Of a stretch of DNA of 64,000 nt, positions 33,764 to 63,460 are shown piece after piece. A model generated the notes under the pieces. It did not search any database, was not told the DNA's origin, and worked only from the letters and a program-made list of their open reading frames with translations. The stretch is from Blastocladiella emersonii ATCC 22665 (Eukaryota; Fungi; Blastocladiomycota). The DNA is taken from positions 186,001 through 250,000 of the forward strand of contig JANHCV010000002.1 in the NCBI GenBank assembly GCA_025594325.1, written 5' to 3'. The translations under genes and the position numbers were made by a program. How positions within the stretch are numbered: position 1 is the stretch's first letter; the number at the start of each line of letters is the position of its first letter.

Positions 33764-35698
33764 CTAGCTTCGCGACGCGTCATACGGCGAAGCCCGCTCA
33801 TTCGAACGCTGGCTCGACGTCGACCTCGATTCGTCACCGCTGACGCTGCTCAAGACCGAGGGCGTTGATGTCTGCGGCGGGTTCACGCCAGGCTCGTGGC
33901 GGTGCAGCTGTGGATCCACTGCAGCCGCGAGTACAGGCCCGCTCGCCGCGAACTGAGAAGCGACAGAAGCCATGCCGCCGAGCCCCTGGATCAGCATGGA
34001 GGCGTAGAGATTCAGATTGGCAGAGAAAGCCACGAACGCCGCCTGCAGCTGCAGCGCGTGAACAAAGTCTTGCTGAGTGAACGAGGGAAGCGCTGGAGCG
34101 GGTGGCTCGGGATACGACGGCGCTGCCGAAGAAGGATGTGAGGTCGGAGCAAGTCCACTTACGTCCGGATAATAATAGTTGTAGGAAGAGTCCGCCTCGT
34201 CCGCCGGCCCGCGGACGTGTGAATCGTAGTGGTTCAGGCGAGAGAACGAAGTCGGCGGCGAGGATGAGCGCAAATCAGCGTGCGAATCGTGGCGGTGCCA
34301 CGAGGGCGACCGCGATCGGCTGCGGCGCTCGCTGCTGTGGTCGTGGTAGGCGTGCTGGTCTCCGTCAGCCGAACTGCTACGGCCGCGCGAGTCGGGAGGC
34401 GAGCGGCTACGGCGGCGAAACTGGCCTCGTGGAGAGTGATAGGAAGACTCGTACTGATTGGGGCTGCGAACTGGCGCGGACGCACGTCGGTTGGTTTGCC
34501 AAGCACCGCGGTCATTCGAGTACGAGCGAGAATGTGACTGAGAACGTGAGCGTGAACGTGAACGTGTGCGGGATCGCGGACGAGGGCGTGAACGTGAGCG
34601 AGAGCGAGAGCGAGTGTAAGAATGAGAGCGTGAACGAGACGGCGAGCGCGAACGGGACTGCGAGCGAGAACGGTCAGGATCGGGCCCGCACTTGATCTCC
34701 TCGAGAGTGATGGTGCCTGCTCGGTGCGGATGCAAGTCAGGCTCGTGCTCCTGGTCCGTGGCGTCTGCGAAGGGGCAGGGAAGCGAGTTGGCCCATCTCG
34801 GACGGAGGCCCGGTGGGATCACGATGGATAGGTCCAGGACCTTTTGGACGGTATCGCTAAGGCAGGTCGCAGGTTAATCTCGCCGCTTCGCACCGAAGAA
34901 CGAGGATGCGTACATGCTCGACTGATCCCACGCGAGCTGGACGTAGAAGGCAGCGTCCTTGGACCAGGACTGATTCAACTTCGTGCACGCCTGTAAGCGT
35001 GCACGGACGTCGAAGAACTCGACGAAAGCAACCAGCAAACCTCTATATGATCCGTCGAGTAATCGTCAGCCGGGCGTGTGGTAACGAGACGACGAGCGAG
35101 TGGTCCACGTACCGGCGAGACTCCTCCTCGACGAGCTCAAATGACCGCAGCTCGCCAAACTCGGCCAGCCGCTGCTGAAGCCAAGCAGCGCTGAGCAAAG
35201 GATCAAGCGGAGCGGACTTGGACTGCAGCTCGATGCGAAGCGAGCCCTGGCTGATGGCGGCCGAGCACGGTGTTCGATGGCGCACGGGATCGCTCGGCAC
35301 CATGTGGTGGCCCTCGATGCGGACGCCCCAGTGCTGCCGCCCGTGCCACTGCGCCAGCGCTGATTGCGCGTCGCGAAGATCGTGCTACGGTTCGAGGTGA
35401 GTGAACGCATTAGGAGGAGGGATCAAACGAGCGAATAAGCACGCACAAAGTTGATGATGGCGAGCTGACTCGCGCCGGCAGCGAGCGGCGCCGTGTAGAG
35501 GTACACGCGCTGTACGCCGGCACACTGGTCCATGAGCTCCTGGCGGTAGTCGATGCGGCTCCGCTTGTCCAACTTCCAAACAAGACGGATGGATCGGCTT
35601 GGTGGTATCTTGGCCCACACGCCGTCGTCGCCCACGGCCGCCGCTGAAGGCGTGCCGGCCTGCGCAGCGTTTGGGGAATACGAGGCCTCGGACATCAT
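33764..35698 (-). CDS. SR-like paralog A': 2 RRM-like domains + RS-rich + low-complexity tail, 581 aa; exons 35698-35447, 35384-35113, 35042-34914, 34856-33764
   Basis: Introns of 62, 70 and 57 nt (phases 0,2,2) give one frame. SIRLVWKL (RNP2-like), LLVAFVEFF (RNP1-like) and RSRSQSRSRSPSRSRS. Confidence 0.8.
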
Positions 35699-36033
35699 TT
35701 CGCGTTGGTGTTGTCGATGTTGCAGCAAGTCAAGCGTTGCAACGAGTGACCATCAGCTTCATGTGACTGCGGGTCCGGGGAGAATCAGCGGAGTGGAAGT
35801 TCAACGCGACGCGTCGGCTCCCCGCCCGAGCGACTCGGCGGACGGACTCGCGTCGCTCATCTCACCCGAGGCCAGCACTGCGTTCAAACCATGTTTTACA
35901 GGCCGCAGCCAAGTCTGTTACGGCCATGAAAGTGTGTGGGGGAGAGGATACAGAAAAGGGGGAAACATTCAAACACGACGGCAGGGAGCGAGCCAGAGAG
36001 CTTCGTCGCGGTCGTCAGCGAACCGTGCGCCGC

Positions 36034-38583
36034 TCAACGACGGCCCGACTGGCGGCGGTCGGCCGAGGTCGCGCGGCCGTCGGCGTTGGCGGCCGCGGGG
36101 GCGGCCTGGCGCGGGATCGCGGCGAGGAGCGCCGCCGTGACGTTGTTCGGCTGCTGCTGCTGCCACAGCTGCTGCATGAGGGCGAGCGTGGTCATGACGG
36201 GCGAGTACTGGACCTGCGGCTGCTGGACCTGCACCTGCGGCGGCGGCTGCTGCTGGTGGTGGTGGTGGTGCGGGTCGGCCGTGGCCGCGGCGGCGGTCGC
36301 TGCGGTAACGGCCGCATTCGGGTTCTGCATCGCAGCCATGGCCGCGGCCACCATGTACGGGTTCGTCTGCATCTGCGACTGAAACTGGGCCATCATCTGC
36401 ATCATCTGCAGCGCCGCGGCGGGGTTCACGGGCGCATGGAGCCCGGCCGGTGCGAGCTGGACCGCGGGCGGCGGGAGCTGGACGGGCGCCGGCGGGCCCG
36501 CGGGCGGCGGCGGCAGCGCGCGCTCACGCTTGTGCTCGCGGTCGCGCGTGCGCGGCGGCGGGGGCGACCCGCGGCGCGGCGAGTAGGAGCGCTGGCGAGA
36601 CTGGCGATGGGTGCGCGACTGCGACTGCGGCGGAGGGGGCGGCGAAGCGTGGCGCGAGCGCGACGCGCGCACGGGCTCGGGGCTCCAGCTGCGATCGCGC
36701 TGCTGGTGCTGGTGCTGCGACTCGCGCGGGCGCTTGTACTCGGCGGGGTCGCGGTCGCGGCGGTACTCGGGCTCGCGCTCGCGCTCGCGGCGGTACTCGG
36801 GCTCGCGGCGGTACCCGGCGTCGCGGGCGTACTCGGCGTCGCGGGTGCGCGTCTGGCGCGGAGCAGCGGGGGCGTCGCGGCCGTAGCCCGACGACGACGG
36901 CTCGCGCTGCTGCAAGTACTGCTGGCGCGACGAGGACGGAGGCGGCGAGTCGTCGCGGTGCGAGTAGCGCGCGTTGGTCGGCGCGTCGCGGTACTGGCTC
37001 GAGCGGTGCGCGGTCGAGGAGGGACCGGCCCGACTGCGCGGCGGCGAGCGCGAGCGCTGGCGCCCGCCGTTGGCGTACCGCGAGGAGCCGTAGTCGCCGC
37101 GGGCCGCCCGGAGCGAGCACCGCGGCTGAACGACCCGTCGCCCGAGTTCTCGGGCGGCATGCGGCCGGTCTCGACGATGCGCAGGGCCCACACGGGCAGG
37201 AAGCGCTTGGGGATCGACCACTCGCCGGACAGGAGCTGGTGCGGGGCGTCGCTACATGGTGGCGGGCAGAGTGTGAGATGCGGCTCCGAGCGTGAGCCAC
37301 AAGGGAGTCGAAACGTACAGCGAGAGCTTGTCCCACGCGAGCTGGGTGCGCATCGTGTAGTCGTCGAGCTTCTCGCCGTTGAGCGACTCGCACGCGTCGT
37401 TGCGCTCCTTGCTGCTGAAGAACTCGATGTACGCGTAGTACGAGCTAGATCCGAGGCATCGCCATGGGTCAGCTCGGCAACCCGCCAGCGATACATGCCG
37501 CCGAGGCGTGCAACGTACCCCTGCGAGTCCTGGTCGAGCTCAAACGAGTAGATCTCGCCAAAGGCGCCCAGAGTAGCCTTGAGGCGCTCGGCGCGCGGCG
37601 GCTCGGTGGGCTGGTCCTTGCTGGGCACGAGGTCGACGCGCAGCGAGCCCTGGCTCCAGCGGTGCTCGCACGGGGTGCGGCGGCGGACGAGCTCGCGCGG
37701 CAGCATGTAGTGGGCGTCGACCTGGGTGTCCCACTGCTCGCGGCGGTGCCAGTAGGTTTTGGCGTTGATGGCGTCGCGCAGGTCGTTCTACGGCGATGGC
37801 AACGGCGAGGTGAGCCTTGGGGATCGAGTCGAACGAGGTGGAAAGCGACGAAAGCGAAGGCGCTCGAGTCGCAAGCGAGGTGGCGAGCGGCGAACGCGAA
37901 GGGATCCGAGCCATATTCGAGCCGCATAAGGCGGCGAGAGGCGAGCGGCGAAAGCGAAGGAGACCGAGTCGCAAGCGGGGAAGCAGCAAGGCAAAACGCA
38001 AGCGAAAGCGAGAGCAAAAGGGGCGTACGAAGTGCAGGATCGCCTGGAAGTCCTCGCCCTTGGCAAGCACGTCGACCTTGTTGACGCCCTCCTCGCGGGC
38101 GAGCTCGCGGCGGTAGACGTCGACGCGGTGGTGGCCGGGCAGGTTGAGCAGGCGGACGGTGCGGGTCGGGGGAAGCGCCGTGACGCCCGCCGCCGCGTCG
38201 CCGCCCTCGGCAGCCTCGCGGTCGTACCGAGAGAGCTGCTGACCGGGCTCACGGTCGTCCTCGTCCATGGGCTCGTCGTCGCGGTCGCGGTCGTGGTTGT
38301 CGCGATCGTCGCGGTCGTCGTGGTCGTCGCGATCGTGGTCGTCGCGATCGTCACGGTCGTCGTGGTGGTCGCGCTCGTGGTCGCGGTCGTGGTCGCGCTC
38401 GGGCTTGGGGTCGGAGTCGACATGTGGCATGGGCGAGCGCGACGGGGAGCGCATGCGCTCGTGCTCGCGCGGCAGGTAGCGGGTGGGCGACGAACCGGGC
38501 GACGCGGCGGGCGACGGGGCGGAGGCGCGCGCCGCGGCGGCGGCGGCGGTCGCGGAGCGGGTCTGCCGCTGGTTGGTGTCCAT
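36034..38583 (-). pseudogene. SR-like paralog B': mirror copy of B with a net 22-nt deletion (frameshift) early in exon 4 at ~37100
   Basis: Exons 38583-38029, 37787-37519, 37444-37319, then from 37251. Reads GGGCGGCCC-GC-GGCGACTAC where B has 24 nt between the same anchors. The shifted frame stops at 36426; the ancestral frame stops at 36034. Confidence 0.75.
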
Positions 38584-41309
38584 GATGCACCGAGTGGATG
38601 GGGTGGGTGAGCTTGATTCGCTGGCCGGGGGAGCGGAGAAGTGAAAGGCGAGAGAGAGAGAGCGGGCGGCGATCACGCCCACCCGCCTGGCGCGTGGCGA
38701 CCTGCGTGGCGACCACTTCGCACCTCCGCCGCACGCCTTGGACAGCTAAAACCTGCGGCGCCTGCACGCGCACGCACACCAAAAAATCCAGAAGCCAGCT
38801 CTCAATAAATTTCGGGCCCGAGACCTGTGCGAGGTTCGCCCTCGCAGCCATGAATTTGTAAATCTAGTCGTCGGCCGCCCCAAGAGGCGAAGAGGCCGGA
38901 AGGTCATGGAATACAGCAGAACAAAGTCGCCGACAAGTTGCTCAAGGTGCCGCGCCTTGCAACCTCCGTGACGGACTTCAAGCAAATTCGGGTGGGATTT
39001 ACAAGTGCGGGGCGGGCGTCGAACCAGTTGTAAGTAGGTCCAGCTGAAAGTCGATCCAGCGAACGAAACGTCGCGCGGCACGGACTTGGGGCCAAGCGAG
39101 GGCGCAAGCGACTTGAGTGCTGGATCGAAGACTGTGGAAGCGGGCGAGCATAGAACGTGGGCGATACGTAAGCGACAGGCTCCAGCTTGGTGTGGTCGCA
39201 AGTATCGAGGCCAATCGTACCCGAAGGCCGTGTTGAGTTGAAAAGCGTCGTGTCGAGCCGAGGCCAAAGAGTCAAAATTGACCTTGGAACCGTTGGAGTT
39301 GGTGGAAATCGAGTGTGAAGGACTTGTTGGCGATTTGACGTCGAACAGCGACCAGGCCGAGGTGCTGGGCAAGAAAGGGTGCTACGGAGGTGACGAAGAG
39401 AGAAGTGTCAACAAGCGAGCGACGCGCCGTCGTCGCGTATGCGCAATCTTAGCGGCTCGAGCAGCGCCATCGAGTCGTTCAAAAGCGGAGACGGGACTAC
39501 CGAAGCGATGATGAAGGGCTTGGATGCTGACGCGAGCCGGGGGTTCGAGCCGCCGGTCCGATCGCCGAGAAGCGTTGATGTACGAGGACACTGGAATGTC
39601 CACGTTCGAGCCGCGCTACGTACCGACAGGTTGGCGCAGTAAACCAAAAGCGAGAGCTGAGACCACGGAAAACCTCGATGTTCTCGAAACTAGGTGAGAT
39701 TAGGGCGTGAAGAAGATCCATTCGGGCACGAGTTGCGTGTCAAGCAGTCCGAAAGTCGAGAACACGACACGGGAAGCGGAGGAGAGCAATCGGTGCGTGC
39801 GCCCACCGCCGACTCGACGTCGCCGAGTTTCAGGGCGGGCGCAGGAGGAGCATCGAGGTCGACGTATCTGTCATAAAGAGCAGAGTGCATGAGGTCGCAG
39901 CTTGGCTCGGGGCTTACATTCGCTAGCATGAGGTGGGGTGGTGGGGAGCGGGAGCGGTGGCGGCGGTGGGAGCCGCTTTGGCCACGCCGCTCCCTCCGCC
40001 ATCACGCGCTGTATCGCGATGCTCCTCATGCGCGGCGAATACGTCCTCGCCGCTCGAGTATACGCTCAGCTTATGGGTAATGATAGCTGAAGCCTTGTGC
40101 GATCATCATCGCGCGAGTCACCGCCCGCGTCGCGGTGGAGTCCTCCAACGATGGCCGCGGGCACCACAACCTCACACCATGACGATGGCCGCGAGCACGA
40201 TCGCGACTCCGCGATACTTGTACACAACAGCCCACCCACCCTATATCTCTCCCGCTCACATCGCCACACGCCTCCTACACCTCCCCCGGCTCGGGCGACG
40301 ACCCGATCCCAAGCAGCTCCCGCTGGAGCGCGAGCGATCGCGACCCTCCGCTGCTGCCAACCCTGTCCGCGACGGGCCGCTCCGGCGTCGGCTGCGCCTG
40401 CATGAAGGAGCTTGCAAGCATGGACCCGGGCTGCAGCATGGCCGCGGGCACCGCGACCGCCGTAGCGGGCGCGAGGAACTGCTGGATCCCCGCGGCGGCG
40501 CTGAGCTGCTGCTGCTGCGCCTGAGCCTGCGCGAGTTGCTGGAACACGGCGGCCTGCTGCTGCTGCTGTTGCGCTGCCGCGTTCGATTGCTGTTGTTGCT
40601 GGAGCAGGGCAGCCTGCTGCTGCACGGCATTCGTCTGCTGCTGCTGTTGCTGGAGCAGCGCGGCCTGGAGCGTCGCCTGCAGCTGGAGGTACGGCTGCAT
40701 CACCTGCTGCATGAACGGCGCGAGCGCCGCGGTCAAGTCCATTGTGATCGGGTCCACCACCACCTGCGCGGGCACGACCTCGTCCACCACCTCCCCGGGC
40801 TCGGGCGACGGGGACCGCGAGGAGCCCGTGCTCATGGGCGAACGAGACCGCGACCGCGACCGTGAGACCGAGCGTGAACTAGAGCGGGACCGCGACCGCC
40901 GCGGCGAAGGCGACCGCGACGCGGTACTCGATCCACGGCTGTCCCTGCTCCGGCCGCGCGTAGACGAGCGGCCGCGGCGCGAGGAACCGCGGTCGCGGTC
41001 ACCGTCGCCGTCGGTCGCGTAGCGCGCGAGCCGCGGACGATCCCGAGTGCGGTCACGCTCGCGGTCGCGACTATCAGACCGCGAGCGGCCGCGGCCCGCT
41101 TCCCGCACGGGCGGCGGCGAGTAACTACGCCCGCGACGGCTTGCGGAGCGGGAACGGGAGTGCGACCGACCGCGCCTGCTCTGGGCGGCAGTTGCGGTTG
41201 GTGCGGCGGGCAGCCTGCATTGACGCTCCAGGGCCGCGGCCCAGTTGGGCAGCAGGTGCGGGGCGAGCTTGAGTGCGCCCGTGACGATCTGACGCGAGAT
41301 ATCACTGTT
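37120..41309. repeat. Apparently identical 4,190-bp core of the large inverted repeat, left copy
   Basis: All mirror ORFs have coordinate sums of 97198 and identical translations. First mismatches at 37119/60079 and 41310/55888. Confidence 0.92.
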
Positions 41310-42224
41310 TTCACACGTGAGGGCGGGGGTGAGCATGAGGGCGGACACGGGTGGCGAGAGAAGAACGTACACTGCGTCCCAGTCCCACGAGAGCTCGGCC
41401 GTGATCTCAAACCCCTCGAACTCGTCGCCGTCGAGCCGTTCGCGGGCGAGGAGGCGGTCACGGATATCGTACCACTCGACGTGGGCGACGTACGTGCTAC
41501 ACGGTGCGAACAGCGATGAGCAACCAACCTCGAAACCAGCGTCAGACCCGAGCAAGCGCACCTAGCTGACTCGGCGACGAGCTCGAACATGCGGACCTGG
41601 CCGAACCGGGCGACGAGCTTCTTGAGGCGGTCGGGGCGGGGCGCGCGGTCCCTCGCGCTGCCACCGGTCGAGATGCGGCGCAGCAGCATGCGGATCGACC
41701 CCTGGCTCCGGCGGTAGTCGCACGGGGTGCGGTGGCGGACGCACTCGTTGGGCAGCATGTAGTGGGCGCGCATCAGGACGCCCCACATCTCGCGCAGGTG
41801 CCACGCGCCCATGGCCATTTCGGCCGCGCGGAGATCGTACTAGGCATCACGGGTTGTGAGCGGGGCACCAACTGGAACGAGCGACGCGGGTACGTACAAA
41901 CTGCACAATGGCGCGGTAGGCGCCGCGCGGGCGGTGGTCGGACCGGGGCACGGCGCGGTCGCAGCTGAGCCGGACAAAGGCGACGCCCGGGTACCGCGAC
42001 AGCTCGCGGTGGCACTTTTCGGGGCTGACCCACCCGGGCACGCCCAGCAGCCGCACGCACCGCGACGGCGGCGGCGTCGTGTACCCTTCGCTGCCGTCGT
42101 CCGAGTCTAGGTCGTCGTCCGAGTAGTAGTCGCTGTCCGAGGCGCCCGCGTCCGCGCGAGACGCCGCGGGCTGCGGGTCGCGGTCGAACCGCGACGAAAA
42201 GGTCTGAGATCGGTTGCTGCTCAT
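40275..42224 (-). CDS. SR-like paralog C: 2 RRM-like + RS + poly-Q tail, 586 aa; exons 42224-41898, 41839-41562, 41496-41371, 41304-40275
   Basis: Introns of 58, 65 and 66 nt (phases 0,2,2). CVRLLGVPG, YVAHVEWY, long RS tract and Q-rich block. Confidence 0.82.
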
Positions 42225-42487
42225 GTTGCGCCGACTCGGGCTAGGTGTCCATGGAGTAGTGCGTAGGAGGTGACGGATCAAGGTTGGATCCAGAGCGAAC
42301 GAGCGGAAGCAAGCAAGCGGCCAGCTCATTGCGCGTGACTCGATCTTGCGCCGCCGCTCAGCAACGCAGCACGTCTCGCACCCCTGCGCGTCACGGGCAC
42401 GTCTCCATCTCTCACCAGTCCCGGGTTGTGCCATCGTATCTGTACATTCACGATCGGTACAAGTCCAAACTCACAAATCGCGCGTCC

Positions 42488-44312
42488 TCACGAGGCGGGC
42501 CGCCGGCGCGGATCGCTCGACTGCGGACGGCTCGCCTCCGCCGCCGCTGCTCCCGGTGCCGCTTGCACCCCATTCACACCATTTTGCTGCTGCTGCATAC
42601 CACGCGCAAACGACGCCAAGAGGTCCGCGAGCGAGTTCCCCGCTTGCGGCGCAAACGGCGACCAGAACGGGTTGCCCGACATCTGCATGGCCGCGGCGAG
42701 CTGCTGCATCGGGTTCGGGGCGGGCGGCGGCGGTGCGCCCGATGCGGCGGCAAGCAGGGTGGCGAGGTTGGCGGGCGGCGCGAACGCGGGCGGGGGTCCT
42801 GGTGCCGGCGCTGGTGCGCGCGGGGCCGACGAAGCAGGCGCGCGATCGAGCGAGGCTGCCGAGTCACGGAGCTCGCGCGGCTGCGGAGCAGGTGCTTGTG
42901 CGCGGGGCGACGTGATCCGCGCCCGCGACGACGGCGGCGGGGACGCGTCCCGGCGCGCGTTTGAGCGAGCGGGTGACCGGCTGCGGCGGCGCGGATCGCG
43001 GCGACTCGATGGTGGCGGCGGCGGCGACGATGTGCGGCTGTGCCTACGCTCTCGGCGCGGTGGCGAGCGTGAACGGGACCGGGACCGAGGGCGGTTCCCC
43101 CCGCGGCGATCACGATCACGATCACGGTCGCGGTCGCGGTCACGGTCGCGGCTTGGACTCCGCCGCCGCGCGCCGGTACGGTTTCGGCTTGGGCTATGGC
43201 TTCGCGACTGTCGGCGGGCGCCGCGGGCGCGGTGCGGGCTCGGTGAACGGGCCGATCGCGAGCTGCTAGGCGCAGACCGGCGAGGCGGCGGTGGCGAGCG
43301 GCTCCGCGGGCGAGGGCGCAGGCGCGGGATCGTGATCCCGGCGGGCGGAGGTGCGGGTGCGCCGGAGCCGGACGCAAGCTCCGCCATGCGCTTGTTGCGG
43401 AGGTGCTGCTCGATGCACTGGCCGGCCCACGCGGGGAGGAAGGCGCGCGGGACTTTGGTGGTGCCGTCGAGGACCTCGTTGACAAAGTTGCTACACGGCG
43501 GATGGGACGTCGTGAGTTGGCCGGAGTGGCATGAGCGAGGGCAGAGCAGGGGAGTACGTACATGGTCGACTTGTCGTAGGCAAGAACCGCGCTCAACCGG
43601 AACCCGTCGAGCCGGCCGACGTACTCGTTCAGCTTGCGGTACGCGTCCAGCCGCTTGCCCGAGTCGTAGTATTCGGCGTAGGCAAACCACTCGCTAAACA
43701 GCAATCTTCGCGTCAGCTCTCATCGCCCTCCACGCGCGAACGCACAAATCCGTACCTCGGCGACACCTGCTGAAGCTCAAAGTCGAAAAAGTCGCCGTAG
43801 CTCGCGAGCAGTTTCTGGAGGCGCTGCGGGCACGGCGGCGCGACGGGCTCGGCTCCGGGCTCACCCCGCAAGCTGATGCGGAGCGACCCGACGCCCATGC
43901 CGTGCGGGCACGGGACGCGGTCGCGGAGGGGCTCATTGGGCAGCTTGAAGTGGGCCGTGATCTCGGCGTCCCAGTGCACGCGCTTGTGCCAGTAGTCGCG
44001 CGCCTTGATGGCGTCGCGCAGGTCTTGCTACGGCGCGCGGAAGGCGCGTGGGGCGCGCGGTTCGCGTCAGCCGGGGACGGCGGGCGTCGGACGCATGCGC
44101 GAGGGTGAGGGTGAGGGTGGGCGTACAAAGTGCATCATGGCCTGGAACGTGTTGAACGGCTTCCCGCGCTTGTGCATCACGTCGACGGAGAAGGTGCCGC
44201 GGAACGCCTTGAGCTCCCGCTTGTACTCGTGCGCCGTGCCCCGGCCGGGCAGGCCGAGCAGCCGGATCGACCGCGCCGCGGGGATGTGCGACAGGTCGAC
44301 GTCGTCGTTCAT
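42488..44312 (-). CDS. SR-like paralog D: 2 RRM-like + RS/RD + Pro/Gln tail, 530 aa; exons 44312-44127, 44027-43756, 43693-43562, 43490-42488
   Basis: Introns of 99, 62 and 71 nt (phases 0,2,2). SIRLLGLPG, WFAYAEYY and RSPSRDRDRDRDRDRDRDR. Confidence 0.82.
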
Positions 44313-44615
44313 GTTAATCAGTGGAGCTTCATAGGTTCGCGTGTGCTGCGGGGGAGAGGGGAAGGCGCGAGCGCAAGGCTCCCCTGAAGACACCGGGCGA
44401 GAGCGAGCGGAGAGAAGGAAAAAATGCGACGCGCTGCGCCCCAGCGACGCGTCAGCCCGCATCACCTGACCTTGAACACACTCCCCGCCTGCACGGCCGC
44501 CACTGCGAGCCACGCGCCGCCGCGACGATCATCGTTGGCGCCAGACGACGACGTCGGAGGGTAACCTGCACGCAGCACAAACTCACAGTACCTGCAACGC
44601 ATCAACACATTCACC

Positions 44616-52679: not shown

Positions 52680-55241
52680 CTACTTGGCGTCCTTGCTCAC
52701 CGCCACTGGCGTGGGCCCCGACGCAAACTCGTGCTCCAGAATCGCCTTGTTCACCGCCTGATACGTCGTGTGCCCGGCGAGCTGAAGCAGGTGTGCGTAC
52801 TGGCGGACGTACTCGAGGACGCGCGGGTCATTGAGCTGGCGGTTCTCGGCAATCTCGACCGTGACGAGGGTGCCGATGAACTTGGCATCGGCCTTGAGCC
52901 CGCGCGACGGGACGATCTCAGTCGCAACGCGCAGCGCCGCGGACACGTCGTGCAGGCGCAGGTACGCCTCGACGGCGGACGTCCAGACGTTGATCCCGCG
53001 GCCGCCCCACGCCGCGCCGAGGATCTTGTTCACCGTAGCGTCGAGCCGAGCGCGGTCGCCGGCGAACCCGCACGCGTCGAGGACGAGCGCCTGCGTCGCG
53101 CCGTCGGGCGCGATGCCGCGGTCCATCATCGCGTCCCACAGCTCGAACACGCGGTCGAACCGCTTGCCGAGCGAGTACCCGAGCACGAGCATCGACCGGA
53201 TCGGGTGCCGCGGGTGCACCACGACGCCGAGCGACTGGCCGAGCGCGAGCATCTGCTCCATGCGCGGCACGTCGCCTTGCTGCGAGAAGTGGTTGATGAA
53301 GAACCCGAGCGTGCTCGTGGACGGCGCCACGCCGTGCTCCGCGAGCGTCGACCGCCACACGCGCAGCGCGTCGCCCACGCGATCGGCCGCGAGCAACCGC
53401 TCGACCTGCGTGTTGATCTCGTACTCGATGGCGTCGGGTGAGCTCGGGTTCGCGGCCGCCGGGTTGCCCGGCGCAGCACTCGCGGGCGCGGCGCCGAGTT
53501 TACCCGTCACCGTGGGCGGCGCGATCTCGAGCGGCTTGCGCCCGGGCGGCCGGCGGTACTCGAGCATGTGGACGACGGTCGCGTGCGTCGGCGCACCGAG
53601 CCGGACGAGCTTGTGGTACACGGCGACCGCGGCGTCGTACCCGTCCGTCGCGAGGACGGACTTGACCGCCGCCGTGACGTACTGCGACGTGAGGACGACG
53701 CGGCCGGCGCGGTGGTGCGCGAGCGTGTCAGCGTGCATCTGGCGGACGACGTCGCCCTTGCCGAGCGCGGCAGCGGCCTCAAGCGCCATGCACGTGAGCC
53801 GCGAGGTCGCGACCTCGCCCGCGCTGACGTACTCGGCGTACTGCGCGAGCGCCGCCGCGTAGTCCTCGCAGTGCAGCTGCAGCGCCATGAGCGCGTACAT
53901 GGCGTTCTCCTCGAGCGCGATCCCGTGCGCGCGCGCGAGCGCGACGACGGATTGCGCGAGATCGGCCTTGCGCTCGATCGAGCACCGCTCCAGCACCCGC
54001 GCCACGACGCGCGGGTTGTGCGTCGCGTGCGCGTACGCGTCGAGGCCCTCGGCGCCGGCTGCGCGCGGGATCCCACCGGCGGGCGGCGGGGTGCCGCGGT
54101 CGAGCATCTCGCGGAACGCAGCGACGGCAGAATCGGCGTCGGGGCTCGCGTTCACGAGCGCGACGTTGAGGTGGCCCGAGTCAAACGGCGTCGCGATGAA
54201 CCCGCGTTGCGCGGCCGACTCCATGACCTCGCGCACGCCGGTCGCGTCCTTGACGGTCGCCATGGCGGAGGCCGCGGTCGTCATGATGTGCACGGACATG
54301 GCGGCATCCGGGATCTGCGTGCGGTACACGTCGAGCGCGCGGTGCGGGAGACCGGTGCGCGAGAACATGTTGATGAGGCCCGAGTAGAATTTGGACAGGT
54401 CGCCCAGGTTGAGCGGCGCGGTCGGCGGCGGGCGGCGCGACAGGAGCTCGGTCTCGAAGGCCGGGACGCGGGTGCCGAGTTGCCGCCGCGCGATGAGGCG
54501 CGCGAGCGCGGACAGCGTGAAGTCGTTCGGGAACCACGACAGGGCGGGGTCGCGCGAGAGCTCGACGACCTTGGCGAAGAGCAGGTCGTAGCACTCGTCC
54601 CACTGCGGGCGCTGGTCGGCCGTGACCATCGGGCAGCTCGCGAGAATGGTCGAGAGGGTCGACATGACCTGCTTGGTGTCGTCGCGCAGAGCAAAGGCCA
54701 CCGTCAGCGCGTCCTGCGCGCCCCGCGGGTCCTCTACGCGTGCGAGGGATTCGGTGAGGCTGGAGCATGGAGCCGTAGCTATGGTAGTCGACAGCGTACT
54801 CTTGTTCATGGCCTTGAGCAACATCTGCACCGACGGGAAGTAGGCCGGCGGGTAGAGTGGCGGCCGCGAACGCTCTGACTTCTGCCCCTTTTGGCTTTTA
54901 CCGGGAACATCGCGCTCAGAGGAAGAAGAAGAGAAGCTCGGCAGGACCACGTTGTCGGTGCGCCGAAGCACGGGCTCGTCTGGGCGCGGGTACCCCGGCC
55001 GGCCGCCGCTGCCCAAGGGGCGCTTCGGCTTGGACTGGCGGGGATCGGCGTCGCGCTGGCGCTGCTGACCCTCGGAGCGCAGTTTCGGTTTGGGTTTGCC
55101 GCTCGGCGGACCATGCCTCCGCGGCGAGCCGCCGTTGTTGTTGTTGAGAAGCAGTGCCGACGACGCGATCGTTCGCCGAGGCGCCAGCTGGTAGAGGGTG
55201 CCGCGCGGGGCGAGATGCATCAAGTTCCGTATAGATTGCAT
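52680..55241 (-). CDS. Pentatricopeptide-repeat (PPR) protein, probably mitochondrial, 853 aa
   Basis: PPR-like helix pairs (YSGLINMFSRTGLPHRALDVY; LVLGYSLGKRFDRVFELWDAMMDRGIAPDGATQALVLDAC; VWTSAVEAYLRL). Basic, acid-free N-terminus from ATG 55241. Confidence 0.85.
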   Translation of the reverse strand: MQSIRNLMHLAPRGTLYQLAPRRTIASSALLLNNNNGGSPRRHGPPSGKPKPKLRSEGQQRQRDADPRQSKPKRPLGSGGRPGYPRPDEPVLRRTDNVVLPSFSSSSSERDVPGKSQKGQKSERSRPPLYPPAYFPSVQMLLKAMNKSTLSTTIATAPCSSLTESLARVEDPRGAQDALTVAFALRDDTKQVMSTLSTILASCPMVTADQRPQWDECYDLLFAKVVELSRDPALSWFPNDFTLSALARLIARRQLGTRVPAFETELLSRRPPPTAPLNLGDLSKFYSGLINMFSRTGLPHRALDVYRTQIPDAAMSVHIMTTAASAMATVKDATGVREVMESAAQRGFIATPFDSGHLNVALVNASPDADSAVAAFREMLDRGTPPPAGGIPRAAGAEGLDAYAHATHNPRVVARVLERCSIERKADLAQSVVALARAHGIALEENAMYALMALQLHCEDYAAALAQYAEYVSAGEVATSRLTCMALEAAAALGKGDVVRQMHADTLAHHRAGRVVLTSQYVTAAVKSVLATDGYDAAVAVYHKLVRLGAPTHATVVHMLEYRRPPGRKPLEIAPPTVTGKLGAAPASAAPGNPAAANPSSPDAIEYEINTQVERLLAADRVGDALRVWRSTLAEHGVAPSTSTLGFFINHFSQQGDVPRMEQMLALGQSLGVVVHPRHPIRSMLVLGYSLGKRFDRVFELWDAMMDRGIAPDGATQALVLDACGFAGDRARLDATVNKILGAAWGGRGINVWTSAVEAYLRLHDVSAALRVATEIVPSRGLKADAKFIGTLVTVEIAENRQLNDPRVLEYVRQYAHLLQLAGHTTYQAVNKAILEHEFASGPTPVAVSKDAK

Positions 55242-55797
55242 GGTGTGGTTGGGCGTGTGCGAGGAAGGGAACTGGCGAAGAACACCGCGCTGAGCGCTCG
55301 CGCTTGTCGTCAAGGAAGCGAGCATCACGTGCGATGCGAGACACGTTTGTCTCTCGCGTGCTATCGCTTGGCGATGAGCCGCGCGTCCTCGCACACCGCA
55401 ATTCGATGAGCCGTGCTGGAACTGCGGCGCTCCTCCCGCCGCGTCGACCAAGCCCGGCTCCAAGTCGGGCGTCACGGCCGGGGCCCGCGGCGAAAGCGGC
55501 GGCTGGGAGCCGTCGGTGCCGCAGATGTACGCGCCGCGCGCGTGGCCGTACGTGCACGGCGGCGACGACGCGTAAGGGCCGCCGCCATCGTGGTTCTACG
55601 GCGCCCGCGGCCACCGCGGTGCTCCCGTCTGCTACGTGCCCGTTCCCGTCGCCGTCCCTGTCTCGGCAAGCGGTTCGGCCAAGGTCGGAGCGGGTGAGAA
55701 CGACGGCCCCACGGCGTCCAAGCGCCCGGCGGCCCGCGGAGGCGACGAAGAATGGTCAGACGAGTTTTTCGAGCAGTTGTATGCTCGTTAATCGTGA

Positions 55798-56923
55798 GCC
55801 GAGCTCTCGTGAGACTGGGATGCAGTGTACGCGATCCAAACCCACTCTCGCCCCGCCATTTGGCATACGCTCACCTCGTGTGTGATTGAACAGTGATATC
55901 TCGCGTCAGATCGTCACGGGCGCACTCAAGCTCGCCCCGCACCTGCTGCCCAACTGGGCCGCGGCCCTGGAGCGTCAATGCAGGCTGCCCGCCGCACCAA
56001 CCGCAACTGCCGCCCAGAGCAGGCGCGGTCGGTCGCACTCCCGTTCCCGCTCCGCAAGCCGTCGCGGGCGTAGTTACTCGCCGCCGCCCGTGCGGGAAGC
56101 GGGCCGCGGCCGCTCGCGGTCTGATAGTCGCGACCGCGAGCGTGACCGCACTCGGGATCGTCCGCGGCTCGCGCGCTACGCGACCGACGGCGACGGTGAC
56201 CGCGACCGCGGTTCCTCGCGCCGCGGCCGCTCGTCTACGCGCGGCCGGAGCAGGGACAGCCGTGGATCGAGTACCGCGTCGCGGTCGCCTTCGCCGCGGC
56301 GGTCGCGGTCCCGCTCTAGTTCACGCTCGGTCTCACGGTCGCGGTCGCGGTCTCGTTCGCCCATGAGCACGGGCTCCTCGCGGTCCCCGTCGCCCGAGCC
56401 CGGGGAGGTGGTGGACGAGGTCGTGCCCGCGCAGGTGGTGGTGGACCCGATCACAATGGACTTGACCGCGGCGCTCGCGCCGTTCATGCAGCAGGTGATG
56501 CAGCCGTACCTCCAGCTGCAGGCGACGCTCCAGGCCGCGCTGCTCCAGCAACAGCAGCAGCAGACGAATGCCGTGCAGCAGCAGGCTGCCCTGCTCCAGC
56601 AACAACAGCAATCGAACGCGGCAGCGCAACAGCAGCAGCAGCAGGCCGCCGTGTTCCAGCAACTCGCGCAGGCTCAGGCGCAGCAGCAGCAGCTCAGCGC
56701 CGCCGCGGGGATCCAGCAGTTCCTCGCGCCCGCTACGGCGGTCGCGGTGCCCGCGGCCATGCTGCAGCCCGGGTCCATGCTTGCAAGCTCCTTCATGCAG
56801 GCGCAGCCGACGCCGGAGCGGCCCGTCGCGGACAGGGTTGGCAGCAGCGGAGGGTCGCGATCGCTCGCGCTCCAGCGGGAGCTGCTTGGGATCGGGTCGT
56901 CGCCCGAGCCGGGGGAGGTGTAG
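55798..56923 (+). pseudogene. Remnant of paralog C: decayed end of exon 3 and intron 3, plus an intact copy of exon 4
   Basis: GCCGAGCTCTCGTGAGACTGGGATGCAGT|GTACGC versus C GCCGAGCTCTCGTGGGACTGGGACGCAGT|GTACGT (TGG>TGA). Identity starts at 55889, within the acceptor AACAG. Confidence 0.85.
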
Positions 56924-59900
56924 GAGGCGTGTGGCGATGTGAGCGGGAGAGATATAGGGTGGGTGGGCTGTTGTGTACAAGTATCGCGGAGTCGCGATCG
57001 TGCTCGCGGCCATCGTCATGGTGTGAGGTTGTGGTGCCCGCGGCCATCGTTGGAGGACTCCACCGCGACGCGGGCGGTGACTCGCGCGATGATGATCGCA
57101 CAAGGCTTCAGCTATCATTACCCATAAGCTGAGCGTATACTCGAGCGGCGAGGACGTATTCGCCGCGCATGAGGAGCATCGCGATACAGCGCGTGATGGC
57201 GGAGGGAGCGGCGTGGCCAAAGCGGCTCCCACCGCCGCCACCGCTCCCGCTCCCCACCACCCCACCTCATGCTAGCGAATGTAAGCCCCGAGCCAAGCTG
57301 CGACCTCATGCACTCTGCTCTTTATGACAGATACGTCGACCTCGATGCTCCTCCTGCGCCCGCCCTGAAACTCGGCGACGTCGAGTCGGCGGTGGGCGCA
57401 CGCACCGATTGCTCTCCTCCGCTTCCCGTGTCGTGTTCTCGACTTTCGGACTGCTTGACACGCAACTCGTGCCCGAATGGATCTTCTTCACGCCCTAATC
57501 TCACCTAGTTTCGAGAACATCGAGGTTTTCCGTGGTCTCAGCTCTCGCTTTTGGTTTACTGCGCCAACCTGTCGGTACGTAGCGCGGCTCGAACGTGGAC
57601 ATTCCAGTGTCCTCGTACATCAACGCTTCTCGGCGATCGGACCGGCGGCTCGAACCCCCGGCTCGCGTCAGCATCCAAGCCCTTCATCATCGCTTCGGTA
57701 GTCCCGTCTCCGCTTTTGAACGACTCGATGGCGCTGCTCGAGCCGCTAAGATTGCGCATACGCGACGACGGCGCGTCGCTCGCTTGTTGACACTTCTCTC
57801 TTCGTCACCTCCGTAGCACCCTTTCTTGCCCAGCACCTCGGCCTGGTCGCTGTTCGACGTCAAATCGCCAACAAGTCCTTCACACTCGATTTCCACCAAC
57901 TCCAACGGTTCCAAGGTCAATTTTGACTCTTTGGCCTCGGCTCGACACGACGCTTTTCAACTCAACACGGCCTTCGGGTACGATTGGCCTCGATACTTGC
58001 GACCACACCAAGCTGGAGCCTGTCGCTTACGTATCGCCCACGTTCTATGCTCGCCCGCTTCCACAGTCTTCGATCCAGCACTCAAGTCGCTTGCGCCCTC
58101 GCTTGGCCCCAAGTCCGTGCCGCGCGACGTTTCGTTCGCTGGATCGACTTTCAGCTGGACCTACTTACAACTGGTTCGACGCCCGCCCCGCACTTGTAAA
58201 TCCCACCCGAATTTGCTTGAAGTCCGTCACGGAGGTTGCAAGGCGCGGCACCTTGAGCAACTTGTCGGCGACTTTGTTCTGCTGTATTCCATGACCTTCC
58301 GGCCTCTTCGCCTCTTGGGGCGGCCGACGACTAGATTTACAAATTCATGGCTGCGAGGGCGAACCTCGCACAGGTCTCGGGCCCGAAATTTATTGAGAGC
58401 TGGCTTCTGGATTTTTTGGTGTGCGTGCGCGTGCAGGCGCCGCAGGTTTTAGCTGTCCAAGGCGTGCGGCGGAGGTGCGAAGTGGTCGCCACGCAGGTCG
58501 CCACGCGCCAGGCGGGTGGGCGTGATCGCCGCCCGCTCTCTCTCTCTCGCCTTTCACTTCTCCGCTCCCCCGGCCAGCGAATCAAGCTCACCCACCCCAT
58601 CCACTCGGTGCATCATGGACACCAACCAGCGGCAGACCCGCTCCGCGACCGCCGCCGCCGCCGCGGCGCGCGCCTCCGCCCCGTCGCCCGCCGCGTCGCC
58701 CGGTTCGTCGCCCACCCGCTACCTGCCGCGCGAGCACGAGCGCATGCGCTCCCCGTCGCGCTCGCCCATGCCACATGTCGACTCCGACCCCAAGCCCGAG
58801 CGCGACCACGACCGCGACCACGAGCGCGACCACCACGACGACCGTGACGATCGCGACGACCACGATCGCGACGACCACGACGACCGCGACGATCGCGACA
58901 ACCACGACCGCGACCGCGACGACGAGCCCATGGACGAGGACGACCGTGAGCCCGGTCAGCAGCTCTCTCGGTACGACCGCGAGGCTGCCGAGGGCGGCGA
59001 CGCGGCGGCGGGCGTCACGGCGCTTCCCCCGACCCGCACCGTCCGCCTGCTCAACCTGCCCGGCCACCACCGCGTCGACGTCTACCGCCGCGAGCTCGCC
59101 CGCGAGGAGGGCGTCAACAAGGTCGACGTGCTTGCCAAGGGCGAGGACTTCCAGGCGATCCTGCACTTCGTACGCCCCTTTTGCTCTCGCTTTCGCTTGC
59201 GTTTTGCCTTGCTGCTTCCCCGCTTGCGACTCGGTCTCCTTCGCTTTCGCCGCTCGCCTCTCGCCGCCTTATGCGGCTCGAATATGGCTCGGATCCCTTC
59301 GCGTTCGCCGCTCGCCACCTCGCTTGCGACTCGAGCGCCTTCGCTTTCGTCGCTTTCCACCTCGTTCGACTCGATCCCCAAGGCTCACCTCGCCGTTGCC
59401 ATCGCCGTAGAACGACCTGCGCGACGCCATCAACGCCAAAACCTACTGGCACCGCCGCGAGCAGTGGGACACCCAGGTCGACGCCCACTACATGCTGCCG
59501 CGCGAGCTCGTCCGCCGCCGCACCCCGTGCGAGCACCGCTGGAGCCAGGGCTCGCTGCGCGTCGACCTCGTGCCCAGCAAGGACCAGCCCACCGAGCCGC
59601 CGCGCGCCGAGCGCCTCAAGGCTACTCTGGGCGCCTTTGGCGAGATCTACTCGTTTGAGCTCGACCAGGACTCGCAGGGGTACGTTGCACGCCTCGGCGG
59701 CATGTATCGCTGGCGGGTTGCCGAGCTGACCCATGGCGATGCCTCGGATCTAGCTCGTACTACGCGTACATCGAGTTCTTCAGCAGCAAGGAGCGCAACG
59801 ACGCGTGCGAGTCGCTCAACGGCGAGAAGCTCGACGACTACACGATGCGCACCCAGCTCGCGTGGGACAAGCTCTCGCTGTACGTTTCGACTCCCTTGTG

Positions 59901-60078
59901 GCTCACGCTCGGAGCCGCATCTCACACTCTGCCCGCCACCATGTAGCGACGCCCCGCACCAGCTCCTGTCCGGCGAGTGGTCGATCCCCAAGCGCTTCCT
60001 GCCCGTGTGGGCCCTGCGCATCGTCGAGACCGGCCGCATGCCGCCCGAGAACTCGGGCGACGGGTCGTTCAGCCGCGG
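55889..60078. repeat. Apparently identical 4,190-bp core of the large inverted repeat, right copy
   Basis: Reverse complement of 37120-41309. Confidence 0.92.
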
Positions 60079-61279
60079 CGCCCGCTCCGGGCGGCCCGGC
60101 TCGCCCCGCCGCAACGGCGGTGGCGACTACGGCTCCTCGCGGTACGCCAACGGCGGGCGCCAGCGCTCGCGCTCGCCGCCGCGCAGTCGGGCCGGTCCCT
60201 CCTCGACCGCGCACCGCTCGAGCCAGTACCGCGACGCGCCGACCAACGCGCGCTACTCGCACCGCGACGACTCGCCGCCTCCGTCCTCGTCGCGCCAGCA
60301 GTACTTGCAGCAGCGCGAGCCGTCGTCGTCGGGCTACGGCCGCGACGCCCCCACTGCCCCGCGCCAGACCCGCACCCGCGACGCCGAGTACGCCCGCGAC
60401 GCCGGGTACCGCCGCGAGCCCGAGTACCGCCGCGAGCGCGAGCGCGAGCGCGAGTACCGCCGCGACCGCGACCCCGCCGAGTACAAGCGCCCGCGCGAGT
60501 CGCAGCACCAGCAGCGCGATCGCAGCTGGAGCCCCGAGCCCGTGCGCGCGTCGCGCTCGCGCCACGCTTCGCCGCCCCCTCCGCCGCCCCCTCCGCCGCA
60601 GTCGCAGTCGCGCACCCATCGCCAGTCTCGCCAGCGCTCCTACTCGCCGCGCCGCGGGTCGCCCCCGCCGCAGCGCACGCGCGACCGCGAGCACAAGCGT
60701 GAGCGCGCGCTGCCGCCGCCGCCCGCGGGCCCGCCGGCGCCCGTCCAGCTCCCGCCGCCCGCGGTCCAGCTCGCGCCGGCCGGGCTCCATGCGCCCGTGA
60801 ACCCCGCCGCGGCGCTGCAGATGATGCAGATGATGGCCCAGTTTCAGTCGCAGATGCAGACGAACCCGTACATGGTGGCCGCGGCCATGGCTGCGATGCA
60901 GAACCCGAATGCGGCCGTTACCGCAGCGACCGCCGCCGCGGCCACGGCCGACCCGCACCACCAGCAGCAGCAGCAGCAGTTGCTCCAGCAGCAGCAGCAG
61001 CCGCCGCAGGTCCAGGTCCAGCAGCAGCCGCAGGTCCAGCAGCAGTACGCGCCCGCCATGGCCGCGCTCGCCATGATGCAGCAGCAGTGGCAGCAGCAAC
61101 AGCAGCAGCAGCAGCAGCTCCAGCAGCTTCAACAGCAGCAGCCCAACAACGTCACGACGGCGCTCCTCGCAGCGCTCCCGCGCCAGGCCGCGCCCGCCGC
61201 CACCGACGCCGACGGACGCGCGACCTCGACCGACCGCCGTAGAGTGGCCGACGACCGCCGCCAGTCGAGCTGTCGTTGA
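58615..61279 (+). CDS. SR-like paralog B: RD/RE-rich N-terminus + 2 RRM-like + RS/RE + poly-Q tail, 760 aa; exons 58615-59169, 59411-59679, 59754-59879, 59947-61279
   Basis: Introns of 241, 74 and 67 nt (phases 0,2,2). TVRLLNLPG, YYAYIEFF (RNP1-like) and ACESLNGEKLDD..MRTQLAW. Confidence 0.85.
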
Positions 61280-61412
61280 GCGAGCGGTGGACGGTCCACC
61301 GACGGACGACCGCGACGACCGTGACAAAGCTGACCCGGACCATTCGCCCCGCTATCTTGTTTGAGTGTTTCTCCTGTTCTGTATTCTCTCCCCCACACAC
61401 TTTCATGGCCGT

Positions 61413-61418
61413 AATAAA
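61413..61418 (+). terminator. Candidate polyadenylation signal AATAAA of gene B
   Basis: AATAAA ~135 nt after the B stop, inside a 60-nt block conserved with the left arm, where it reads AACAGA. Confidence 0.45.
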
Positions 61419-61620
61419 CGTGGCTGCGGCCTGTAAAACATGGTTTGAACGTACTGACCTCTCGGACGCGATGAGCGCGACGCGACGCGTCGAGTCACAC
61501 GGGTGGCGGGCCGACGACGACACGACGCGTTGGACTTCCGCCTCCCGCCGGACCCGCAGCCAAATGAAGCTAATGAACGACACTTGTCGCAACGCTTAAC
61601 CAAGTGCTACCAACGTGAGA

Positions 61621-63460
61621 ATGTTGTCTTCCGAGACCCCGCCTTCGTCGAACGCAGCCGCGGCACACGACCCGCAGGACGAGTTCCCTCCGAGCCGGGC
61701 CATTCGCTTGATGTGGAAGTTGGACGAGCGGATTCAGGCCGACTACCACCAGGAACTCATGGACGAGTGCGTCGGGGTGCAGCGCGTGCATCTTTCCACG
61801 GCGCAGTTCACTTACGGCGCGTGCCAGTTCGCTATCATCAACTTTGTGCGTTCGTTCTGCTCCCGCTTCGTGGTGCGCTCACTCATCTCGAACCGAGTAG
61901 CACGACCTTCGCGACGCGCAGACGGCGCTGGTGCAGTGGCACGGGCGGCGGCATTGGGGCACCCGCGTCGAGGCCCACTTCATGCTGCCGTGCGAGCCCG
62001 TGCGCCATCGCACGCCGTGCTTGAGTCTCAACTCCCAGGGCTCGCTTCGCATCGAGGTTCAGCCCAAGTCGACCCCGCTTGATCTTGCGGCCTTTGCGTC
62101 GTGGCTTCGTGAGCAACTCGGCGAGTTTGGCGAGCTGCGCTCGTTTACACAGGTCGAGGAAGCGTCGCGCCAGTACGCGATTTGTACTCGTACTGCCACC
62201 GCACGCTGGGCTAACGATCACTCTCCCGGATCGTGTAGTGGGTTGCTGGTCGCCTTCGTCGAGTTCTTTGACGGCCGCGATCGGATCAAAGCGTGCACGG
62301 AACTGAGCGAGGCGCGGTTCGACGGATTCACCATCGATGTCCAGTTTGCGTGGGATCAGTCGAGCGTGCACGTGTCTCCCTTCCTTACCTTCGTGTGACG
62401 CGGCAACCTACACTGATCCGCATCTCATCTTAGTGATATCACGGAGAACATCTTTAACCATTGTGTCGAGCTCCCGATACGACTTCTTCCGAAATGGGCC
62501 AGATCACTTCTCAATCCCACCGACGACGAGGAATACCAACACGAGTTGGAGTTTGCTTCGCGTCGCGCCAGCGCCATCACTCTCGAGGAGCTGAGGGGCG
62601 GGTCCGACCCGCTTCGTTCTCGCCCGCAATCCCGCTCTCGCTCACGTTCTCAGTCTTGTTTGGAGTCCCGCTCTCGCTCTCACACTCGCTCTCCCTCGAA
62701 CGATGCGGGTGCTTGCATCAACCAGCCTGTACCGGCGCGAGGCCACGATCCAGCACAGTATGGGTACTCGACGCCCCGCGACCATTCGCGCGGGCGGTCG
62801 CGCCGCCGTAGCCGCTCACCGCGCGATTCGCGCGGCCGTAACAGTTCCGACGACCGGGATCGGCGCGCCCATCGCGACCGCGACTACGGATACGAGAGCC
62901 GCGGCCGGTCTCGGTCGCCCTCGCGGCATCGTAACGATTCGTTGTCTAGCTTACCTTCCTTCTCGCCGTCATTCTCGAATTTACACCGCTCCGACTCGCA
63001 CGTTCGCGGGCCGACGAACGAGGTCCATCCTTCGCAGAACTTTTACTCCCCGCCGACGAGCGGATTCGTGCCGCCCTTCAATCCATTTCCTGCGGTCGCA
63101 CCTTATCCCGGAACGCCACCGTTTCCCTTGCTCGCTCAACAGCAGCAGCAGTATCATTTCGCCCACGCGCTTGCGCTGCAGGCATCGTTCGCGGCGGCCG
63201 TCGCGTCCGACCCGCCGCTCTACTCTTCCTTGATGGCCTTTGGTTTCGGCGGTATCGCTTCGGTGCCGGCCGAGTTCACAGCGAATAGCCCAATGTTTGC
63301 AGCTGCTTCCGCTCCACAGCCTGTGGGTGAGCCGGCGCACAAGCCCGTTGGGGAGTCCACACCGCCTTCGATTCCGAGTGGTGGTGGCGGCGAGGAATCA
63401 AGTTCGACGGCGGTCCCGCACCCGAATGAGCGGGATCAGGCCGAAGAGGCGGGTAACTAG
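61621..63460 (+). CDS. SR-like paralog A: 2 RRM-like + RS tail, 550 aa; exons 61621-61845, 61901-62172, 62239-62367, 62434-63460 (intron 3 is GC-AG)
   Basis: Exons 2 and 3 are the same length as in A' (272 and 129 nt). AIRLMWKL, LLVAFVEFF and RSRPQSRSRSRSQS. Confidence 0.75.

Follow-up and report, generated by a model that had tools for sequence, protein, structure and literature searches.

Do the six rapidly diverging genes crowded around an inverted repeat on one contig of the zoosporic fungus Blastocladiella emersonii form a gene family of their own, a set of decaying duplicates, or a local expansion of something older? The question is raised by a stretch of 64,000 nucleotides from strain ATCC 22665 (GenBank assembly GCA_025594325.1, contig JANHCV010000002.1, positions 186,001 to 250,000 of the forward strand), here termed the window, from whose first letter all coordinates below are counted. 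Each of the six loci, D, C, B′ and A′ on the minus strand and B and A on the plus strand, is predicted to encode a pair of RNA recognition motif (RRM) domains. The explanation favored here, which we consider probable, is that they are in-paralogs of one conserved fungal RNA-binding gene, expanded specifically in Blastocladiella, with the ancestral architecture retained, and that they are predicted to act as post-transcriptional regulators.

Gene structure and the RRM pair

Six-frame scans of the window with hidden Markov models (HMMs) find the core containing the RRM pair at exactly six loci, all within 33.7–63.5 kb, and these loci stand in mirror order around the inverted repeat. The GC content of the window is about 60–75%. 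At each locus, all GT..AG introns that join conserved frame segments without stops were enumerated, and a single consistent predicted model resulted, with three short introns of 55–241 nt whose positions are identical in a protein alignment of the six loci. The predicted donors are GTACGT, GTACGC, GTGCGT, GTGCGC or GTACGG and the acceptors TAG or CAG, and a CT(G/A/C)AC-like branch motif lies upstream of the acceptor in several of the introns whose upstream sequence was inspected. The resulting models are 530 (D), 586 (C), 760 (B), 581 (A′) and 550 (A) amino acids (aa) long. The ab initio models in GenBank concur with introns 1 and 2 of A, A′ and D, with intron 3 of D, and with the 760-aa length of B.

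The Pfam, folding and database tests used GenBank-derived models, including those of A′ and D, and a reading of A through intron 2, which is 66 nt long and free of stops in frame. This A reference (61901–62395) consists of exon 2, a 22-aa insertion representing intron 2, and exon 3, and was modeled by AlphaFold2 (AF2) from an alignment of paralog fragments. Its RRM2 takes the βαββαβ form with a predicted local distance difference test score (pLDDT) of 70–85, and all leading Foldseek matches to the model in the PDB are RRMs, U2AF homology motif (UHM) domains included. The AF2 model of residues 1–215 of the GenBank D protein, based on 46 homologs, has a pLDDT of 77 and a predicted template modeling score of 0.72. 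It contains two βαββαβ domains, RRM1 at pLDDT 54–86 and RRM2 at 90–97, together with an ordered linker and a helix after RRM2, and tandem-RRM structures dominate its Foldseek matches in the PDB.

The Pfam RRM_1 model (PF00076) matches RRM2 of A′ with 31.9 bits against a gathering threshold of 20.7; it has no match in GenBank D, and Pfam did not detect RRM1 in any copy scanned. Exon-by-exon Pfam scans gave RRM_1 only below threshold (16–19 bits for exon 3 alone), phmmer searches of the PDB with the A open frame yielded chance matches only, and all scores in an ESM Atlas feature search were below 0.9, too low to be informative. A word-indexed protein search with the exon 2 motif of B gave no match; the annotated A and A′ models fall short of its length filter. 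In the alignment, the ribonucleoprotein motif RNP1 is kept in RRM2, as A(F/Y/H)(V/I/A)E(F/Y/W). The RNP1 phenylalanine of RRM1 is changed to isoleucine or methionine, and both domains carry arginine at the RNP2 aromatic position of β1.

Much of this had been proposed by an earlier sequence-only reading of the window. Its six two-RRM loci and a remnant of C are borne out by the HMM scans and by an orphan copy of C exon 4, and its three introns at homologous positions, in phases 0, 2 and 2, by the enumeration of GT..AG introns at each locus. All of the sequence signatures that it listed were found in the alignments. The tandem RRM folds for which it had suggested an AlphaFold check appear in the models, RRM2 with confidence and RRM1 with moderate confidence, and the tract rich in arginine/serine (RS) and arginine/aspartate (RD) follows them as it had described.

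Relatives in other fungi and among Mei2-like proteins

A profile built only from window exons 2–3 was run against 1.84 billion representative proteins and matched 361 of them at E ≤ 1e-3. The eight best matches are B. emersonii proteins encoded on the same contig: H9P43_002016 (A′), H9P43_002019 (D), H9P43_002025 (A), H9P43_002026, H9P43_002027, H9P43_002029, H9P43_002030 and H9P43_002031. The array runs on immediately past the window end, first with 002026 and 002027 and then with 002029, 002030 and 002031. The best full-span matches outside Blastocladiella are single proteins of Paraphysoderma, Sorochytrium and Catenaria, with E-values of about 1e-14 to 1e-15, and further matches come from many Basidiomycota, Mucoromycota, Glomeromycota, chytrids and one aphelid. 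Orthologs include Catenaria anguillulae ORZ32542.1, Sorochytrium KAL7748110.1, Paraphysoderma KAI9143643/4, Mixia GAA98917.1 and Melampsora EGG01666.1, and every family member outside Blastocladiella is named only “hypothetical protein” or “RRM domain-containing protein”. No Ascomycota are present among 83 orthologs retrieved with a Tilletia query; the family may be absent from that phylum or too diverged there. The family consensus reads ERPCRTLFVRN..RGMAF.TYYD.RAAE..DVHYSLPRD..CDRDKNQGTL..RFVEF.DSRAC..FAWD.

In a maximum likelihood tree (LG+C20), the B. emersonii copies are all gathered in a single clade (100/99), whose stem measures 2.0 substitutions per site and whose terminal branches measure 0.3–1.3; this clade nests with Sorochytrium, Catenaria and Paraphysoderma (96/97). 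Within it, A and A′ are sisters (97/90). Gene structure points the same way, since both Catenaria and Sorochytrium have an intron at the exact site and phase (0) of intron 1 (..TY|YDLRDA versus ..NF|HDLRDA) and a second intron about four codons from intron 2 of the window family. In this comparison intron 3 is found only in the B. emersonii genes. RS/RD runs after the RRMs also occur in orthologs from Blastocladiomycota and Mortierellomycotina, and most orthologs bear a QQ(M/L)(L/I)xM(A/I)A-like motif in a Q/M-rich tail.

Membership in this unnamed pan-fungal family is indicated by the full-span profile match, the architecture, the nesting in the tree and the common intron. The profile match covers the C-terminal half of RRM1 together with the linker and RRM2. 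In the window genes as in the wider family, the RRM pair is followed first by an R-rich RS/RD tract and then by a Q/M-rich tail, and intron 1 agrees in position and phase. The B. emersonii genes differ from the wider family in number, with at least 11 linked copies, whereas other species mostly appear once in the match lists (a few genera recur as strains or species). Their branch in the tree is also very long, the canonical RNP aromatics have disappeared from RRM1, the third intron has been gained and, in some copies, the RS runs are much longer. The family linker CDRDKNQGTL has become R(T/V)PC...QGSLR in these copies, and the linker motif H.x(L/I/V)P...R(T/V)P(C/Y) is confined to B. emersonii proteins. 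As judged from sequence, the window genes are best described as in-paralogs (co-orthologs) of a conserved, widespread, apparently low-copy and uncharacterized fungal family.

This placement changes the earlier picture in one respect. The genes had been called an unrecognized family, and the profile search finds instead that they belong to a conserved one. The sequence-only reading had also named orthology to a known, conserved, single-copy serine/arginine-rich (SR) or heterogeneous nuclear ribonucleoprotein (hnRNP) family as one of the results that would overturn it; conservation is indeed found, but the family is no known SR or hnRNP family and is itself uncharacterized. The proposal of a local, lineage-specific and fast-diverging amplification agrees with the single clade and its branch lengths.

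Two side observations concern the relatives. The copies downstream of the window are interleaved with an unrelated 541-aa gene lacking Pfam matches, and several of the downstream paralogs are modeled with a Q-rich tail but without an RS tract. In Paraphysoderma sedebokerense, the ortholog is divided in GenBank into two models of 98 and 275 aa, while Logan contigs of 1.6–1.7 kb encode an uninterrupted 459–461 aa; these contigs may be transcripts, which would mean that the gene is both expressed and spliced in P. sedebokerense.

The profile matches include Acrasis kona KAL0485872.1, an “RNA recognition motif MEI2 protein” that bears the signature of the Mei2 RRM3. Aligned with this protein by hhalign, the family alignment gives a probability of 99.9% (E 7e-33) over 166 columns across RRM1–RRM2. 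An HMM of Mei2 RRM1–2, built from 81 RRM3-bearing Mei2-like proteins, scores fungal orthologs at 131–142 bits and generic multi-RRM proteins at 33–63 bits. Among the Swiss-Prot models searched with Foldseek, plant MEI2-like 1–5 stand on top with template modeling (TM) scores of 0.50–0.54 over both domains, compared with about 0.30–0.35 for the tandems of ELAV, PABP and Sxl. The Mei2 link is solid for the fungal orthologs.

What is common to the Mei2-like proteins (S. pombe Mei2, plant AML/OML/TEL and protist MEI2) is the N-terminal tandem RRM1–RRM2 module, with the signature RTLFVRN ... YYD(I/L)R ... (I/V)H(Y/F)S(I/L)P ... NQGTL ... RFVE(F/Y)(F/Y)D.R and, in the models, a similarly close packing of the two domains. 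The difference lies further downstream, where the place of RRM3 is taken by the RS/RD tract and Q/M-rich tail in window copies and fungal orthologs. The Mei2 RRM3 model (PF04059) has no match in the exon 4 translations of A, C and D, in GenBank A′ and D, or in the orthologs tested. Its motif RTT(L/V)M(I/V)KNIPNKY occurs among the first 220 collected proteins only in the Acrasis MEI2 control, and a word-indexed search with the Mei2 RRM3 gave at least 120 matches, of which all those listed are from plants and protists. The window genes are thus not Mei2-like proteins in the strict sense: the N-terminal module is of that type, and RRM3 is lacking.

The RS tract raises the alternative that the genes are diverged but otherwise ordinary SR splicing factors related to SRSF1, Srp2 or Npl3. 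RS/SR makes up 74% of the best 50 aa of A′ and 60% of those of C, compared with 38% for A, 36% for D and 30% for B. The SR criteria set out by Manley and Krainer in 2010 reportedly comprise an RS domain 50 aa or longer in which RS content exceeds 40%, a second domain that is a pseudo-RRM with SWQDLKD or else a single canonical RRM, and splicing activity. Two RRMs followed by an RS tract recall such proteins, A′ and C lie above 40%, and SR and Npl3 RRMs are found among the weak sequence and structure matches to the orthologs. However, A, B and D lie below that value, the SWQDLKD heptapeptide and any pseudo-RRM signature of its type are absent from all window gene models, the nearest specific relatives by profile and fold are Mei2-like RRM1–2 and not SRSF, and basidiomycete orthologs have no RS tracts altogether. 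Compared with SR and SR-like proteins (SRSF1–12, S. pombe Srp2, S. cerevisiae Npl3), the window proteins likewise place N-terminal RRMs before an R/S-rich low-complexity region, but their RRMs are of a different lineage, their RS tract lies inside the protein, ahead of a long Q/M-rich tail, and RS content varies widely among paralogs, with the tract absent in many fungal orthologs. “SR-like” is an apt description of the genes, which do not qualify as members of the canonical SR family; that they are ordinary SR factors that have diverged is extremely improbable.

Integrity, selection and possible roles of the copies

If the six loci are in-paralogs of a conserved gene, the condition of the individual copies matters. 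Paralog D (42488–44312, minus strand) has exons at 44312–44127, 44027–43756, 43693–43562 and 43490–42488; its GenBank model, H9P43_002019, has only 452 aa, 78 codons of the RS tract being removed there as an in-frame “intron”. Paralog A′ (33764–35698, minus strand; exons 35698–35447, 35384–35113, 35042–34914 and 34856–33764) corresponds to the 229-aa H9P43_002016, and paralog A (61621–63460, plus strand; exons 61621–61845, 61901–62172, 62239–62367 and 62434–63460) to the 172-aa H9P43_002025; both GenBank models read through intron 3 and stop inside it. The GenBank models of A, A′ and D look wrong and need correcting. In A, the homologous donor site of intron 3 lacks GT and reads GCACGT (A′ AT|GTACGC versus A GT|GCACGT; 62366–62375), so that splicing as modeled would need a GC donor at 62368 or the weak GTCTCC 6 nt downstream at 62374.

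Paralog C (40275–42224, minus strand) has exons at 42224–41898, 41839–41562, 41496–41371 and 41304–40275. Paralog B (58615–61279, plus strand; exons 58615–59169, 59411–59679, 59754–59879 and 59947–61279) encodes a protein that opens with an acidic RD/HD region, continues through the RRM pair and an RS/RD/RE tract, and ends in a long Q-rich tail. Its counterpart B′ (36034–38583, minus strand; exons 38583–38029, 37787–37519, 37444–37319 and 37251 onward) has an identical RRM pair and lacks 22 nt that are present in B. This deletion, at about 37099 (37098–37100 versus 60098–60122), shifts the frame of the tail, which leaves the RS/Q-rich frame (open to 36034) for an alternative basic frame ending at 36426. 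Five copies look intact, and one, B′, is frameshifted. The shifted frame of B′ runs for about 224 codons without a stop. Microhomology of the GGCGGC type borders the deletion, which lies at the exact end of the fully identical repeat arm.

Such damage invites the explanation that most of the cluster is evolutionary debris, in which neutral segmental duplicates of one functional gene are decaying into pseudogenes and the apparent conservation reflects recent ancestry. Between A and A′, the ratio of nonsynonymous to synonymous divergence (dN/dS) is 0.40 (bootstrap 0.26–0.60) in the RRM pair and 0.36 (0.26–0.46) in the tail, synonymous divergence (dS) is 0.6–1.1, and third codon positions change most often. 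This indicates relaxed purifying selection and not positive selection. Ratios for older pairs (0.56–1.13) were discarded as unreliable, dS being saturated and GC content at third codon positions (GC3) 0.71–0.94. The frameshift in B′, the orphan C exon 4, the intron 3 of A without a GT donor, a ratio near 0.4 that is high for a regulator, and the ease with which frames stay open at high GC3 all suit decay. It is less easily reconciled with five copies that keep frames of 530–760 codons and all nine to twelve splice signals despite the dS between A and A′, with ratios that are significantly lower than 1 for RRMs and tail alike, or with structural positions that are invariant in all copies. Moreover, the profile matches contain no conventional ortholog that could serve as the one functional gene. 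Decay of most copies is therefore regarded as unlikely.

A functional set of in-paralogs remains the preferred explanation, and several points weigh against it. The GenBank annotation is ab initio, look-ups of RNA runs for D alone and for a 3.2-kb stretch listed none, the gene models given here are predicted from genomic DNA alone, and long open frames are weak evidence of function at a GC3 of 0.7–0.94. As described, B′ is frameshifted and A has lost the GT donor of intron 3. The alignment behind the D model consists mostly of orthologs and may impose their domain arrangement on it, and confidence in the modeled RRM1 is only moderate. In the tree, long-branch attraction might make the B. emersonii copies look more monophyletic than they are. 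The window paralogs themselves score only 22–31 bits against the Mei2 RRM1–2 HMM, and D does not score at all; their Mei2 link is therefore transitive, by way of the orthologs. Finally, the wider fungal family is functionally uncharacterized throughout.

Under the in-paralog explanation, the copies would retain an ancestral layout that begins with a compact two-RRM tandem of the Mei2-like N-terminal type, with a short conserved linker and a helix after RRM2, and continues with an R-rich RS/RD tract and a Q/M/A-rich tail. The RRM1–RRM2 unit may recognize RNA mainly via RRM2, where the RNP1 aromatics are kept, while RRM1, having lost the canonical RNP1/RNP2 aromatics, may have turned to binding protein. 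Other RS proteins could be recruited by, or co-condense with, the RS/RD tract, which is phosphorylatable, and the Q/M-rich tail. The paralogs might thereby act in splicing, or in mRNA storage and translation, with diversified specificities. A role as splicing regulators in particular is speculation.

Mei2 offers a possible lead. A 2026 study reported that RRM1 of S. pombe Mei2 drives recruitment to processing bodies (P-bodies) and translational repression, and in other eukaryotes Mei2 proteins regulate development and meiosis (PMC12951761). The behavior of S. pombe Mei2 RRM1 is a lead for the function of the window genes and not evidence of it. The expansion may have produced stage-specific regulators of RNA fate that, for example, package, silence or release stored mRNAs of the B. 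emersonii zoospore, or that restrain RS-rich Gag-like elements of the genome, which is an unlikely proposal. If it were true, the paralogs would have diversified along with the RNAs that they target, and the Mei2-like RRM1-type module would direct proteins to granules and repress translation, as RRM1 of S. pombe Mei2 does (PMC12951761).

Although the biological importance of the cluster is modest for now, it ties an unannotated, fast-evolving cluster of a model zoosporic fungus to a widespread but unstudied fungal RNA-binding family. In this family the N-terminal half of Mei2-like proteins occurs without the defining RRM3, and the N-terminal Mei2 RRM pair thus has an evolutionary life of its own. 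The cluster is a natural multi-copy system for asking what this module does.

The inverted repeat and its spacer

The left arm (37100–41309) and right arm (55889–60098) of the inverted repeat are each 4,210 nt long and 100% identical. Outward from the arms, mirror identity drops stepwise to 99–100%, 96%, 87–90% and then 71–78% across A/A′, and on the left side weaker mirror similarity reaches outward to about 34256. The inner boundary falls 4–5 nt inside intron 3 of C. The left arm includes exon 4 of C, exons 1–3 of that gene being single-copy, and because of the position of this boundary the right arm holds only an orphan C exon 4 (55889–56923, plus strand), which begins at the repeat boundary, 4–5 nt upstream of the copied splice acceptor.

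A perfect repeat might be an artefact of assembly, and this was rejected on read depth. In contigs assembled independently from DNA runs of the same sample as the assembly, the depth of the arms compared with the flanks is 271–284x versus 126–139x in run X1 and 47.6x versus 21.2x in run X2, and the contigs break at 41309 and at 37098–37120. Depth of about twice the flanks, together with contig breaks at the arm ends, means that the two-copy repeat is real. The divergent arrays around an inverted repeat seen in the sequence-only reading are therefore upheld. The copies may have spread by tandem duplication and one inverted duplication comprising A, B and C exon 4, whose inner 4–5 kb would have been kept identical, most likely by gene conversion between the arms or by very recent re-duplication.

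The same reading had raised the possibility of a switch locus for the life cycle or mating, by analogy with tra/fem/csd. In a hypervariable developmental locus of this kind, the diversity of paralogs or alleles would itself be the signal, and the inverted repeat might act as the switch. Rapidly diverging duplicates with RRMs and RS tracts are what such a locus would resemble, the palindrome encloses a GATA transcription factor, and Mei2 proteins are developmental and meiotic regulators elsewhere (PMC12951761). Yet the dN/dS of A versus A′ (0.36–0.40) is below 1, and inversion of the spacer would recreate the same gene structures, since both arms carry the same C exon 4, and so would be no obvious switch. 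In addition, B. emersonii is not known to have a sexual cycle. A switch locus is accordingly considered very unlikely.

The spacer between the arms is 14.6 kb long and contains exons 1–3 of C, paralog D and three further genes, each in single-copy sequence. These are a BING4/Utp7-type WD40 gene (44616–46312, plus strand), the gene for the GATA zinc-finger protein, with an open frame of 1,326 codons (47511–51491, plus strand), and a gene for a pentatricopeptide repeat (PPR) protein (52680–55475, minus strand).

Within the arm, run X1 depth rises to 690–1,215x at 38273–38666 and 40440–41030, compared with about 270x elsewhere in the arm, and loose ends are numerous in these two stretches. The low-complexity stretches of the arm that code for RD/HD and for Q-rich sequence are evidently repeated at many other sites in the genome.

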